This document shows positions 6,641-39,162 of a stretch of DNA of 64,000 nucleotides, one piece after another; within the stretch, counting starts at the first letter, position 1; each line of letters opens with the position of its first letter. Origin of the DNA: Camelus ferus (taxonomy: Eukaryota). The translations under genes were made by a program, and so were the position numbers. The DNA lies in NCBI RefSeq assembly GCF_009834535.1, contig NC_045707.1, positions 19,902,001 through 19,966,000 on the forward strand. The letters are read 5' to 3'. Under the pieces are notes generated by a model that had not been told where the DNA came from, made no database searches, and saw nothing but the letters and a program-made list of their open reading frames with translations.

Positions 6641-8249
6641 ATAAGTAAAATTTTAAAAGAAAACTGTCCTAGTAGTGAGTTGGCTAATTGATAACTTTTA
6701 TGATGTTTATTTTTCCCCTGCTTGAGCCTATATGCTGAATAATGAAAATTCTCTTAAACACTGTAATCCTACAGAGTTCCTTAAATAGTTTTAAAATATT
6801 TTAATTCTGCTATAAATATAAGAATAAGAATTATGCAAATCAAAACTAAGATAATACTTCATAAAAATCTGAAATCAAGTACCAGTATTATTAGTGACTA
6901 TCACAGAAAATTTATATGTAGTATTACTTTTTTCCAATTCCTGTGTTTAAAATTTCTCACAAAACAGCAATTATTTTAGTAATCACTTTCATACATCATA
7001 AACTTACTTGGCACCTTCTGTACTTTTTACTGTGATCTAATTAAACTGGACTGGAATAATAAATGCCAATCAGTGAGTAAATACACTTAGCTCTGAAAAT
7101 CTCTTACCTAAGTGGTAGTTACTATATAAAATATCTGATAATTTTAAATTGTTTTATCTAAAAATTTCTCAAAGATCAGAGAGCTGTAACCGTAGCTTTT
7201 AACAAATTGACAGGCAAAGGTGGATGATGTAAAAAATTTCAAATTACACAAGATCTTGAGAAATTATGACTTATGGAGTGTTCAAATAGATAAGTGTGGT
7301 TAAAAATTAATGTTACCTAGTCTTTTAGAAAATGGCTTTGTTCACTATATCTTTCATATTCTTCAGGTTAAAAGAAAATGAGTATTAATATGCTATCAAC
7401 CACATTCTGAAGGTTTTTTTTTTTCTGCTGTTTCAAATTCTTTCAAATTAGGTTTAGTCTACAATAAGCTTTTAAAAATCTTTTTTAGGGACTCAAGCAA
7501 AATCTACATTCTCTTAGCATCTTATAATGATTCAGACTTGCTACAATCTATTCTTAAGGCCATCAGAAACCAGATTACAGGAGACATTATTTGGCAAAAT
7601 AGAGAAAATGTACATTAGGCTTCATAAATCTGCCCAGTGTAACGAAATATTGTGATTTTTTTTAACATGCTTATGATTATACTTTTTCAGTCCTATAAAA
7701 TTTGGTTTTGTAATTGCTAAACCAAAGAGGAATTAGGAAAGCATATTGGAATAGATTATAGATATATGTGAATTTATATGAAATTTCATTTATTCCATAA
7801 AGGTCTAACATCAAGTTAAAATATGTGCGCCAGCACCGTAGTGCTCTAGCTAGAATCTAAATCTTATTCAAATTCATTCAAACTCATTAGTAATGATGTC
7901 TTAGCAGTTTTTAAACATATTAACCTATTTGGTGGCCTTGATTAATATTATTTAAACTTTCAACTCCAAAAAATCCCTCAGAAGCCCATAAGACCAAAGC
8001 AACACAAAGGCAACATAAGATTAGTTTCATCACTATCAGGAAATATGAAGTGAGGACAAAAGAGTGGTAAGTGTAATGACTTCTTCAAAAAACTCAGTGG
8101 TGGAAGGAATACAGATGCAAGCAAAAACTACATCAATTACATCTCAAATTTTTTAAAAAGGAGAAAAAAGAGCAATACTGATGGAGTATCTGAATTGCAT
8201 AAAGCTGTTTAACTGAAATATACTTTAATCACACATACACAGAGTCAAA

Positions 8250-9030
8250 ATATAGGCACTGTTTCTTAAGATGGCAGAGATTTGAGCATTATTTAAATGC
8301 TGAATGATGGAGTCTTTAAAGAGGAAGAAGTTGAAAAACAGAGCAAAGTAAGTAGAGAGATTAACCTGAGAGTGGAGGAAGGATTCCTCTTCAACAGCAT
8401 CTGGAGGGACTGACGTGGGTTATAAGGGTAACCGGCAGGAAATCGGGGGCTTTTTGTGAAGCAGTGCGGTGGTGAGTTTAAGTGAAATAGAGAAGCTTTG
8501 AAAGGTTTACTATGGAGTTTCCTTTAGGCTGTGGCTAAATACTCTTATCATAGTATTCAGAACTCTTCATAATGCAGCCCCCACATACATCCTCAGCTTC
8601 ACTGGTCCATGCATTCTCACATCCAACCAAATTTTCACTCCAACCAAGTTCATCCAGAGTCCCTGAAATGTTCCTCTTCATGCTGTTTGTTCTGGCAGAG
8701 CCCTCTGCCTGGAACACCTTTCTCCTCACTTCCCTGGGAACATCTCTCATCCTTTAAGAGTTGGCTCCAACCGCCCAGCATCCCTTAAGGTCCCTGTTCT
8801 TTATCTCAGCTACCCTTCACCCAGAGCCTAGTTAGGCACCCTTCTTTATACTTCCTTCTGCACATCTCTTCATCTCAGCATTTTTCATTAGAAATTTTAA
8901 ACACTGGCTTTCCCTTTTCTTCCAATAATCAGAAACTGGGTTTGTTTGTTTTTTTAATTTGTTTCTGGATTTCCTAGCACTGGGCCTGGTGCAATTTAGG
9001 CCAATGAATAAATATTCATTGAATGATATG
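8250..9030. mobile_element. L2 LINE fragments
   Basis: ctctgcctggaacacctttctcctcac...gcactgggcctggtgcaatttaggccaatgaataaatattcattgaatga is an L2 3'-end-like signature. Confidence 0.6.
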
Positions 9031-25972: not shown

Positions 25973-26967
25973 CTAGAGGCCTTCAGGCACCTCAAGCCCT
26001 GAGTGGGTCAGCAGCTCTCCATCCCAAAGGGCAAAGGCAGGCACCACTGGACCCCGGAAATCTGTCTGTAGTGTGTGGACCACAGCAACCCGGCTCACAT
26101 CCACCAGGCTCAGCTTCTGGGCCTCATACTCCAGCAGCAGCCCCACCTTCTCTGGCTGCCCAATGCCCTCAATAGGGGCTTTCTCTTTGGCGAACATGGT
26201 GTGCCACTTGCGCTGGGCATAGGTGAACACCCAGGAACGATCGTCAACACCAATGCAGCTATCCCGGGACATGTCCACATCTGCCACTCCTATTCGGAAT
26301 TGCTGGGAGCGCTTCACTGTCACCTCCCAGTAGTGCCTGCCACTGGTGACCGCTGTGTCTGCCAGCACCACTGCCCACTCCCGGAATCGCTCCACATTCA
26401 GGGCCAATTTTGTGGGCTCCAATCCCACCATGCCATATTTGACACCTGTGTCACCTCTGAAGAGTACCAGGCTGCTGTGAGCGGTCTTTTCTTCCAGTTT
26501 GAAACTGATGCCTGCGGGCAAAGCAAAGAGACGGGATAATGACGTGGGCTGAATCTCCGGAAATAGGGACAAATACATATCCCGATGTGAAACATTCACT
26601 CATGAGATTACAAGGAAACACGGGAAAGTGAGAATGTCAAGCCGGCGAGAGTGGGAGCGCTTCAGTATGCACAGCCCAAGGAGCCGAAAAGCTCGGACTG
26701 GGGAAGCCCTGGTATTTAAAGAAACCAGAGAGTGTCCTAGGTTTGGAATCTTAAGACCAACGCCGATGGGGGAAGGAGAATGAGTCGAAGGGGCTGGAGT
26801 TGTTTCTCCGAGCGGACTCCAGCCAGAATAACAGACGGGAACTATTTTGAAAGCAAAAGAGATTAAAAGGATCTAATCCTACCTCTGCGGGCTTCCGCGG
26901 CGGCAACTCCCAATCGTTTGGCTCCCCAGCGGCACACGCACAGCGAGCGTGCAAAGGGCAGCGCCAT
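25973..26967 (-). CDS. SPRYD4: SPRY domain-containing protein 4, 207 aa
   Basis: complement(join(25973..26511,26883..26967)) = 624 nt. Exon 1 MALPFARSLCVCRWGAKRLGVAAAEARR(G), donor GTAGGA. Exon 2 GISFKLEEKTAHSS...GRHYWEVTVKRSQQFRIGVAD...LEVPEGL*. Confidence 0.97.
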
Positions 26968-32538: not shown

Positions 32539-32889
32539 GACTTGAAGAGCCAGTGGTTTTGGAGACAGGTGCTGGCTGAAGGTCTGGACACCCTGAATTT
32601 TGTGGGGTTTGTCCTTAGGGCATCGTGCCTCAGTGGGAGCTCCGTGTCAGGCACAGTCCCTCACCCCCATGCCTGGAGAGCTGCTGGTGGAGAGCCTGGC
32701 ACTGGTTTTTGATGAGGTCAGTGAGGCCCAGACAAATCCGGCCCTGACTGTGGCACTATTCTCTGCCCATTGGCTTGACCCTCTCCAGGGGTAGCCTATA
32801 TCCTGGCCCAGAGCATGGCAGCCATCCTGGCCTCACTCTTCTTCTACCTGGCTCTGCCCTGGGCGGCTGCAGCCTAACTGGTCACCCAG
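32539..32889 (+). pseudogene. AQP14: AQP14-like aquaporin pseudogene, large exon (TM1-TM3 with first NPA)
   Basis: Polypyrimidine acceptor ending cccag at 32538, donor GTAGGC at 32890. Spliced across two frameshifts: DLKSQWFWRQVLAEGLDTLNFVGFVLRAS / LLVESLALVFDEVSEAQTNPALTVALFSAHWLDPLQG / VAYILAQSMAAILASLFFYLALPWAAAA*LVTQ. Collinear with MIP exon 1 in this window. Aquaporin identity is clear; the subfamily call rests on recalled AQP14 motifs and synteny. Confidence 0.85.
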
Positions 32890-33196
32890 GTAGGCAGAAG
32901 GCCCCCTCCCTGAGTAGGGTGACACTACGTAGGTAATGAGGGTGGATGACTGATATGGCATTAAGGAATGAACAAAAGAGGGGCTAGCCCTGCTCTGTGT
33001 ATCCTGTCATTATGCCACTTTCAATATGATTGAAATAGGCCAATGAGTTAGGCTCAGCAACTCAGGAATTTGGGTGACTCGTTGCAGATCCTTTGCTCAA
33101 ATCTTCCTTGGTAGCTAGATGATGGGGTCTGTGGGCCAACGGGAGGGATGCATGTGTTCTCTCACCCCTTGTCCTAGCATCACTTGTCCCTTCTAG

Positions 33197-33348
33197 GCGA
33201 GCAGGAAGAGTTATGTAGGTCAGGGCCTGGGCATGGAGTTTTTCTCCACTTTCTAGTTGGTACTCACCATGTTTGCTGGGCTTCGCTGGCGGGTGGACCA
33301 GGTGGCCTGGCAGTGGGTTTCTCAGTGACCTGAAGCACTGGTATGAAT
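33197..33348 (+). pseudogene. AQP14: AQP14-like pseudogene, next exon (TM4 to start of TM5)
   Basis: Acceptor cacttgtcccttctag. ASRKSYVGQGLGMEFFSTF*LVLTMFA, then after a ~13-nt deletion GPGGLAVGFSVT*. Aligns with MIP exon 2 ([21 protein letters not shown]...LAVGFSLT). TAG at 33254-33256 sits at the conserved Gln position. Confidence 0.8.
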
Positions 33349-33496
33349 NNNNNNNNNNNNNNNNNNNNNNNNNNNNNNNNNNNNNNNNNNNNNNNNNNNN
33401 NNNNNNNNNNNNNNNNNNNNNNNNNNNNNNNNNNNNNNNNNNNNNNNNNNNNNNNNNNNNNNNNNNNNNNNNNNNNNNNNNNNNNNNNNNNNNNNN
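33349..33496. other. N-run (148 nt)
   Basis: Seen directly; lies between the pseudo-exon and an L1 3' fragment. Confidence 0.99.
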
Positions 33497-34161
33497 AGAC
33501 TCTAATTCAAAAAGACATGTGCACCCCAATGTTCATAGCAGCATGACTTACAACAGTCAAGACATGGAAACAACCTAAATGTTCGTTGACAGATGACTGG
33601 ATAAAGAAGATGTGAGATACACACACACAGACATACACACACACAATGAAATACTACTCAACCATAAAAAAGAATGAAATAATGCCATTTGCAGCAACGT
33701 GGATGGACTTAGAGTTTATCATACTAAGTGAAGGAAGTCAGACAGAGAAAGACAAATATCATGATATCACATATGTGGAATCTAAAAAAATTACACAACT
33801 GAACTTATTTACAAAACAGAAAGAGACTAACAGACATAGAAAACAAACTTATGGTTACCAAAAGTGAAGGAGGGGAGGGATAAATTTGGAGTTTGGGATT
33901 AGATACAAACTACCATATATTAAATAGATAACCAGCAAGGGCCTACTGTACAGCACAGGGAACTATATTCAATATCTTGTAATATGTCTAATGGAAAAGA
34001 ATCTGAAAAAGAATAAATTTATATATATATAAAAAACTGAATCATTTTGCTGTACACCTGACATTAACACAACATTTTAAATCAACTATACTTCAATTGA
34101 AAAAGAAGAAAGAGTTGAAAAAAATAAGCAAAAAAAAAAAAAAGAAAGAAAGAAAGAAAGA
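33497..34161 (+). mobile_element. 5'-truncated L1 3' end with poly(A)/(AAAG)n tail
   Basis: gacatgtgcaccccaatgttcatagcagc...aagaatgaaataatgccatttgcagcaacgtggatggacttagag...aatcaactatacttcaatt, then A-run and (aaag)n. Confidence 0.92.
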
Positions 34162-34929
34162 ACGCACCCGTACAAAGCAGCAGGCTTGGGGAAGGCTGGA
34201 TTCCACTCCTCAAGGGGAAACACAGCTTTTTTTTTTCCTTTCAAGAGTCTAGGCTATCAGAAAATATTGTGTATGCTAATTATATGTAAATATATGTAAA
34301 ATCTCAGGTTTTGAGAGCTCACCTCTAATTTGAAAGTTTGGTGTTTACCTAAGTGGGGAGGCTGCTGTGAAAGAAAATGGGCTGGGGTTCGGTTCTCCAT
34401 AAGGTTCTTATCAACATTTGATAAGGAGTAAAGGGGAAAGGTTGGTAGCTTCAAATAAGGAAATCTGTTCATTGGTGTCTCCGAGGGCACGACATTAGCT
34501 GCTCTTTGCTCCTTATTCTAAGAGGCCATGGGGTCTATGGTTAGGGAAAATCCCTTCCGATTGACACAGCCCTCATCAAATGGCTCCTATTTGTTAAGTG
34601 CTTTATTCTGTGCCAGGCACCATACTAGCCCTGTACCTACTTTTTCTTTGATCCAGAGTAAACTGAGGCTCAGAGAGCTTACATTAATTTATTCAACAAA
34701 TACTCATTTACTGCCCACTGTGTGTCAAGCACAGGGTTTGCAGTGGTGGACAAATCGACAAATCCCTGCCCTCCTGGAGTTTATATCTAGTGGGGATAAT
34801 GTCCCCGCCTAGAAGATGGGAAAGCCAGGGCTGGGTTGCTGCTGTTCGTTATGGATTTCAAGTGCAGAGAATATTCCTTTGTTCATGACATCCCCCTCTC
34901 ATTGGCCTATATATGGCTCCAACTAATTT

Positions 34930-35490
34930 TTTTTAAATAATTAAGCGTCATTATTAACCATCTACCCAACAGAAAAACTAGAACCTTGAGAAGCACTTAC
35001 AGAAATCTGTACTTATGTATGTAAATATCCCGCTTCATCCCCTCGTCTCCCCTAACCTAAGGTAAACACCATCCTGAGTCCTGTGTTTATCATTCTTTGT
35101 TTTCTTTTTTGTGTAGTTGCATGTCATATATATGTGTTTTGAAAAGCATATTTTTATTTTAGATGTTTTTTTTTTTTACTTTATGAAAAGATTTTCATGC
35201 TATGTATAATCTTCTGGGGCTTTTTAAATGACATTTTATTGCTAAAATTTATCCCTACTATTGAGTGTCACTGTGGTGGTACCTCGTTTTGACTGCTGAA
35301 TAATTTTCTGTTGTGTGAATATACCATCGTTTATTCATCCATTCTCCTGTCGATGGGCATTTGGGTTGCTTCAAGATTTTGCTATTGTGAACAATGCTGC
35401 TGTAAACAATCTTGTAACTGTCTCCTGGTGTAAGTATAGGAAAGTTTCCCTTGGGTATGTATGTAAGTGAGAAGTGAAATTCCTGGGTCA
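34930..35490 (-). mobile_element. Antisense L1ME-type fragment
   Basis: ttattcatccattctcctgtcgatgggcatttgggttgcttcaagattttgctattgtgaacaatgctgc. Confidence 0.7.
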
Positions 35491-35899
35491 GACACCCCCA
35501 CCTCCAGACCTTTCCCTAGGGATAGAGGTTTAGGACTCCAGTGTCCTGATAATGGCCATATCAGGAGGCATCAGACCCTCCCATTGCTTCATAGCCATGA
35601 CTCAGTTTCCATCCTTTCAGTATTTTTGCTAGCACCTTGTGAGTTAGGAAAGACGAAGTACAAGCTGATTCTGAGATTTAACTACTAACCCCTCTTCCCC
35701 TGCCCAGCTCCCTGACCCCACTTCCAGGCTATCCATGGAAGACACTTTTTCCTGCTCTGTCTTTGTGGTTTAAAAGGCCAGGCTGAGGGCTTGGAAAGGG
35801 AGGTGCTGGCATGGGGTAGGGGTAGGGAACCCAGGCTCAGAGAAAGCCAGACGCAGCAGATCTATTCTGTCCCAGAGCTGCAGGGTCCACAGATTCCAG

Positions 35900-39162
<3,263 letters not shown>

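Follow-up and report, generated by a model that had tools for sequence, protein, structure and literature searches.

We identify positions 33197-33346 of the window, i.e., the whole 64-kb stretch of DNA analyzed here, as a remnant of exon 3 of the aquaporin gene AQP14, and we consider it almost certain that this exon is non-functional and belongs to a unitary pseudogene that is decaying neutrally in its original place (Table 1). The remnant is a well-supported, ordinary gene fossil, of a known kind and at a known place. Published descriptions class AQP14 as a classical aquaporin related to AQP4, located upstream of AQP0 in every vertebrate that possesses it, and made up of five exons in sarcopterygians (PMC4245216, PMC6906440). 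An AQP14 pseudogene has already been described for placental mammals by Finn et al. 2014 (PMC4245216) and Chauvigne et al. 2019 (PMC6906440), with Cetartiodactyla named among the orders keeping AQP14 fragments (PMC4245216, PMC6906440), and with contigs for seven ruminants and five cetaceans given in the 2014 supplement (PMC4245216), a set that would not cover a suid, camelid, or hippo. Monotremes, marsupials, sauropsids, amphibians, and fishes have an intact copy of the gene. What our analysis adds is a precise description of exon 3, together with the observation that its 13-nt deletion, and not its TAG codon, is shared with Cetacea.

Table 1. Features of the AQP14-MIP region. Positions are those of the window, except for the echidna exons, which are given in locus L001.
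Feature	Positions	Strand	Basis
SPRYD4	25973-26967	-	open frame of 208 codons in main coding exon
AQP14 exon 2 relic (TM1-TM3; first NPA 32735-32743; frameshifts; TAA 32875-32877)	~32539-32889	+	tblastn; alignment A4
Retained AQP14 intron 2, 307 nt	32890-33196	+	CAG/gtaggc and ttctag/G at echidna/turtle splice sites
Pyrimidine tract and acceptor AG (33195-33196) at the 3' end of AQP14 intron 2	33181-33196	+	aligned to echidna/turtle acceptor
AQP14 exon 3 relic (TM4 to TM5)	33197-33346	+	alignments A1-A3; tblastn against whole window
Nonsense TAG for Gln (CAG) of TFQL	33254-33256	+	CAG in horse, echidna, turtle
Site of 13-nt frameshifting deletion	33289-33293	+	13-column gap against horse, meerkat, echidna, turtle
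2-nt deletion between 33329 and 33330, creating TGA 33331-33333	33329-33333	+	alignment
Codon GCA (Ala) at TM5 aromatic/arginine filter position	33335-33337	+	codon projection on echidna AQP14; alignment A1
TGA last codon 33344-33346; ancestral donor GT now AT 33347-33348	33344-33348	+	alignment
Lineage-specific insertion of ~0.8 kb right after exon 3	33347-34157	+	horse and dolphin run straight to window ~34160-34195
Scar of ~0.8-kb deletion removing AQP14 exon 4 and exon 5 relics	35476-35494	+	comparison with horse
Intact MIP/AQP0 gene	36460-36819, 37306-37470, 37892-37972, 38977-39162	+	exon model
Echidna AQP14 exons (L001)	exon 2: 6865-7224 (360 nt); exon 3: 7428-7592 (165 nt); exon 4: 8022-8102 (81 nt); exon 5: 8559-8777		curated

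A Pfam search with 5 stop-free pieces from the two relic exons gave no family, even with the cutoff at E 10, and a search of PDB sequences, for which only the 65-aa piece of exon 2 was used, gave no chain at E 10; these pieces are too short and too decayed. Intact AQP14 genes were therefore reached by synteny, using MIP exon 1 as a query that found the MIP proteins of many vertebrates, and our evidence is the comparison with those genes. In the MIP loci of echidna (L001) and tortoise (L008), a second, intact MIP-family gene is present directly upstream of MIP. All introns of the echidna gene are phase 0, and its exon 2, which shares 93% identity with platypus “Aquaporin 14,” also matches turtle, lizard, marsupial, coelacanth, teleost, and lamprey AQP14. 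When searched against the whole 64-kb window using tblastn, echidna AQP14 exon 3 (55 aa) matches positions 33200-33292 with an E-value of 3e-6, with a collinear second piece at 33292-33330; outside this exon and the upstream exon 2 relic, the echidna AQP14 exons match nothing in the window except MIP itself. The DNA comparison of the window exon with echidna using blastn gave an E-value of 7e-10, and wombat AQP14 matches the relic with an E-value of 3e-8. Judged on these sequence comparisons, the resemblance of the relic to AQP14 lies far beyond chance.

DNA alignments with echidna and turtle AQP14 demonstrated that the relic aligns base for base with intact exon 3 and that the exon boundaries agree. 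The acceptor AG at 33195-33196 is the same base as the exon-3 acceptor in echidna (L001:7426-7427) and turtle, the homologous exon end falls at window position 33346, and the length of the relic, 150 nt, equals 165 - 13 - 2. The earlier note on this DNA had placed the feature at 33181-33348; the exon proper lies within that span, but 33181-33196 is intron. The same note had compared the feature with MIP exon 2 starting in phase 0, and this comparison holds, with intact AQP14 exon 3 equal to MIP exon 2 in both length (165 nt) and phase (0), and with the MIP exon 2 acceptor coinciding with that of the relic (alignments A1-A3). Retranslation reproduced exactly the reported strings and the AG acceptor following a pyrimidine tract: the frame from 33197 reads ASRKSYVGQGLGMEFFSTF, a stop (TAG at 33254-33256), and LVLTMFA, and the frame from 33196 ends in GPGGLAVGFSVT and a stop (TGA at 33331-33333).

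Five lesions are present within or at the edge of this exon. Our alignments place the TAG at the conserved Gln of the TFQL motif, as had been claimed; the cetaceans (gray whale and three delphinid loci) keep the C of this CAG codon and, just downstream of it, carry a 15-nt deletion of their own. The 13-nt deletion that the earlier note had postulated is real, and appears as a gap of 13 columns against horse, meerkat, echidna, and turtle, with a placement that is ambiguous by 3 nt (CAG/CGG microhomology). The stop reported after GFSVT is present as a TGA, but its cause is a second deletion, of 2 nt, that had been missed: the window reads GTGAC--CTGAAG at this site, versus GTGACTTCTGGAG in the whales and GTGACTGCTAGAG in horse. 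This second deletion returns reading to the original frame (13 + 2 = 15 nt). At the 3' end, the stop in the last codon is also seen in whales, and the donor column contains GT in echidna, turtle, and meerkat, and AT in the window, whales, and horse. A gtatga at 33342 resembles a donor but is off the ancestral donor position (33347-33348). Taken as a whole, the AQP14 copy in the window does not have what a functional channel has, i.e., an open reading frame, both NPA motifs, and six transmembrane segments.

Our analysis of the surrounding region identified the rest of the locus. The AQP14 relic (32539-33346) is located 3.1 kb upstream of MIP and on the same strand. The lens aquaporin gene MIP contains four exons with GT-AG introns that are all phase 0, and in exon 1 it is almost the same as the AQP0 structures from sheep and cattle. 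SPRYD4 also appears intact: over the SPRY domain, its main coding exon shares 96% identity with the hyena protein. The upstream relic exon, i.e., exon 2, is matched by wombat AQP14 at 77 bits (E 1e-22, tblastn), and echidna AQP14 exon 2 matches window positions 32542-32892 (E 8e-8, tblastn against the whole window); both the acceptor and donor positions of this exon are conserved (alignment A4). The intron between the two relic exons can be aligned with the horse and cetacean intron at 82-85%. Since this 307-nt intron is kept, with conserved splice-site positions, the relic is a genomic tandem gene upstream of MIP and not a retrocopy, in line with what the earlier note had concluded.

Downstream of exon 3, both an insertion and a deletion have altered the locus. 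The insertion contains a masked run of N at 33349-33496 (148 nt), which covers the start of the insertion, and a frame from 33499 reads an L1 ORF2-like peptide, which we take to be an L1 ORF2 3' fragment. This fragment, with its A-rich tail, occupies 33497-34157 on the forward strand and is missing from the horse, gray whale, and dolphin loci. The horse segment containing the exon 4 and exon 5 relics (L004:8184-9018) has no counterpart in the window, and we found no exon 4 or exon 5 relic in the window using tblastn with echidna exons or sensitive blastn in which the relics of horse, whale, dolphin, and bat served as queries. The window copy is therefore without exons 4-5, and hence without the second NPA motif. 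This deletion is private to the lineage of the window, because cetaceans keep an exon 5 relic.

Several lines of evidence assign the relic to AQP14, as had been proposed, rather than to MIP or AQP4. Over exon columns, relic exon 3 is 66.7% identical to echidna and 66.0% identical to turtle AQP14 exon 3, and 78% identical to the horse relic, but its identity to the window's own MIP exon 2 is only 49.3%. In a tblastn ranking of 405 aquaporins on the relic, marsupial AQP14 comes first, followed by monotreme and sauropsid AQP14. The marsupial proteins score 37 and 35 bits on exon 3 and 75 and 77 bits on the upstream exon, and MIP proteins score at most 21.6 and 30.8 bits, respectively. We also built a tree of 82 rows, for which the relic peptide was written out one codon at a time with the echidna exons as template, and with X in place of each broken codon. 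In this tree, a single clade (SH-aLRT 99) unites the relics of the window, gray whale, delphinid, horse, and meerkat, and its sister is marsupial AQP14 (98), a placement which the echidna template could bias slightly towards AQP14, although the relics nevertheless group with the marsupials and not with echidna. This clade lies inside the tetrapod, and then the all-vertebrate, AQP14 clade (100), with MIP (100) and AQP4 elsewhere, the gnathostome AQP4/1/2/5/6 being present in the comparison set only as unnamed representatives together with a named lamprey AQP4. The orthologue database names of the platypus and turtle genes (“Aquaporin 14”) agree with this assignment. At the TM5 filter position, the Ala of the relic is aligned with Ala in echidna, Thr in marsupials, and His in MIP; AQP4 also has His. 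According to Table 1 of the 2014 study, AQP14 is characterized by A/V/L/I/T at this position (PMC4245216). The relic therefore has the position upstream of MIP in the same orientation, the exon structure, the sequence and clade, and the non-aromatic TM5 residue of an AQP14 gene.

Among intact genes, the closest to the relic are the monotreme and marsupial AQP14 genes (platypus P0140, wombat P0154, sugar glider P0146, and echidna L001:6865-8777). These genes are orthologous to the relic, with the same neighbor and the same exon boundaries, and a TM5 filter residue that is likewise non-aromatic. Amino-acid identity is 62-65% over the first 26 codons of exon 3 and 73-75% over the LAVGFSVT segment. 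The intact genes have open reading frames and both NPA motifs, whereas the window copy contains stops and frameshifts and is without exons 4-5.

We weighed other origins for this stretch of DNA. It could be non-coding DNA that resembles an aquaporin by chance, or it could derive from an aquaporin mRNA as a processed retrocopy, and the single stop-free pieces without a Pfam or PDB match would fit such an origin; we nevertheless regard it as so improbable as to be negligible. Chance is contradicted by E-values of 1e-6 to 1e-10 against real AQP14, by orthologous copies that whale, dolphins, horse, and meerkat have at this same position, and by splice sites at the AQP14 positions, and a retrocopy is contradicted by the presence of the intron and by the ancestral locus. 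The relic could also be a decayed tandem duplicate of MIP itself that arose within mammals, rather than the old paralogue AQP14. Both are classical aquaporins that share the conserved GQ...E.F.T.Q and AVGFS motifs, the relic adjoins MIP on the same strand with the exon length and phase of MIP exon 2 (165 nt, phase 0), and MIP proteins match the relic weakly using tblastn. A MIP duplicate would be expected to show its top similarity to MIP and His at the TM5 filter, and the relic shows neither: it is 49% identical to the window MIP exon 2 versus 67% to monotreme and turtle AQP14, its filter codon encodes Ala, and in the tree it falls, with full support, within AQP14 and well away from the MIP clade, which is itself separate and fully supported. 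On exon identity, hit ranking, and tree we reject this origin, which we hold to be extremely improbable.

A different question is whether the relic, although no longer coding, has been co-opted for a non-coding role, e.g., as an upstream exon or UTR of MIP transcripts, as a long non-coding RNA, or as a lens enhancer. The cattle MIP gene model (L002:10001-22896) extends over 12.9 kb and starts 13 nt from SPRYD4; in the annotation, MIP isoforms thus include upstream exons that cross the former AQP14 region. The persistence of exon 2-3 relics in several orders would also be consistent with a retained role. We consider co-option very improbable, since exon 3 of the window is 78-80% identical to dolphin, whale, and horse with the adjoining intron at 82-85%, so the exon is no better conserved than its neighboring intron; ruminants, a phyllostomid bat, and sloth are without exons 2-3 altogether; the indels differ between lineages; and an Rfam search of the 31.5-36.5 kb region of the window found no match. 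Open reading frames that extend over the relic region were discarded as artefacts running across the N mask. Exon 3 is best explained as a silent unitary pseudogene exon, a reading under which its sequence would be in neutral decay.

The distribution of these lesions among placental mammals dates some of them relative to each other. We compared the orthologous relics of horse (L004), meerkat (L006), gray whale (L009), and three delphinid loci (L010-L012). The cetacean loci were reached via a gray-whale MIP contig and the neighbor SPRYD4, as the ruminants and the phyllostomid bat are without an exon 2/3 relic: searches of cattle, sheep, deer, and phyllostomid bat using blastn and tblastn found none, with only exon 5 or exons 4-5 kept. 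The earlier note had proposed asking whether the TAG and the deletion are shared with other Cetartiodactyla, and the answer differs for the two lesions. The 13-nt deletion is common to the window, gray whale, and all three delphinid loci, and is absent in horse, meerkat, echidna, and turtle, but the TAG at 33254-33256, together with the 2-nt deletion at 33329/33330, is private to the window among the loci compared. The stop in exon 2 (32875-32877) is TAA in the window, TAG in gray whale (L009) and a delphinid (L011), and CAG in horse, meerkat, echidna, and turtle, and is a second inactivating lesion common to the lineage of the window and Cetacea. In our tree, the cetacean relics form the sister group of the window relic (92). 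The sharing of the 13-nt deletion and the exon-2 stop with cetaceans shows that AQP14 was already broken in the common ancestor with whales, which agrees with the cetartiodactyl origin supposed in the earlier note.

The surviving exons also differ between lineages, with exons 2-3 kept in the window, exons 2, 3, and 5 in cetaceans, exons 2-5 in horse, exons 4-5 in phyllostomid bat and sloth, and exon 5 in cattle. In pangolin, no AQP14 relic was found in the locus within 10 kb of SPRYD4. Such a patchwork of exons across lineages is termed “fractionation” in the literature, in its treatment of this gene. The published eutherian pseudogene and the relic in our window are alike in their location directly upstream of AQP0/MIP, in exon structure, and in consisting of scattered exon fragments with premature stops; they differ in that the individual exon 3 lesions and their sharing are not described in the text of the papers where it treats the pseudogene (PMC4245216, PMC6906440).

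Together, these observations are consistent with the following order of events. AQP14 would have become a unitary pseudogene that decays neutrally at its original place, and of which only exons 2 and 3 are left, with the intron between them. The 13-nt frameshifting deletion was probably inherited from an ancestor that the window's lineage shared with whales and dolphins, with the CAG>TAG change and the 2-nt deletion probably gained later, in the window's own lineage. A later deletion would have taken out exons 4-5, and an L1 element would have inserted just after exon 3. We infer that the exon 3 relic encodes nothing, and we would expect no activity from it. The lesion pattern places the breakage of AQP14 before the split between the window lineage and whales, with placental lineages since having kept different exons, in agreement with the published fractionated pseudogene.

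We also asked what the lesions say about the number of times that AQP14 was lost. In exons 2-3 of the five placental relics, no clearly disabling lesion common to all was found. The only change that we saw in all five is the absence of ~12 nt in exon 2, i.e., the LQPA codons of TM2, at about 32660-32672 of the window (A4 columns 161-173). These codons are present in echidna, turtle, and marsupial AQP14, and the placental gap, which is possibly in-frame, measures 11, 12, or 13 nt depending on the species. The exon-3 relics of horse (L004:6502-6666) and meerkat (L006:6419-6583) share a TGA at the DQRRRE/DQQQQRE stretch, which falls inside the stretch deleted in the window and whales, and also share a 2-nt deletion near the exon start that the window and the cetaceans are without. 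It is conceivable, though we think it unlikely, that AQP14 was still functional in early Laurasiatheria and was then independently inactivated in several orders, rather than dying once in the placental ancestor. If such multiple losses did occur, the lesions would be rare genomic markers, joining the lineage of the window with Cetacea, and horse with the carnivore. The TGA and 2-nt deletion shared by horse and meerkat are, in this sense, a possible rare genomic change grouping Perissodactyla with Carnivora.

Our findings are of little importance beyond annotation. The stretch should carry the label of an AQP14 pseudogene exon, which would keep gene predictors from joining it to MIP. The public annotation of intact AQP14 is already confused, and includes fused AQP14-MIP models. 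For example, the names given to intact AQP14 genes (P0261, P0540, P0541, P0147, P0146, and P0260) are inconsistent and include “aquaporin-4-like,” “aquaporin-2-like,” “AQPAe.a-like,” and “alcohol dehydrogenase.” Poison-frog isoforms of 346-376 aa that are named “lens fiber major intrinsic protein” share 58% identity with platypus AQP14, and because of this identity they are likely to be fused AQP14-MIP gene models.
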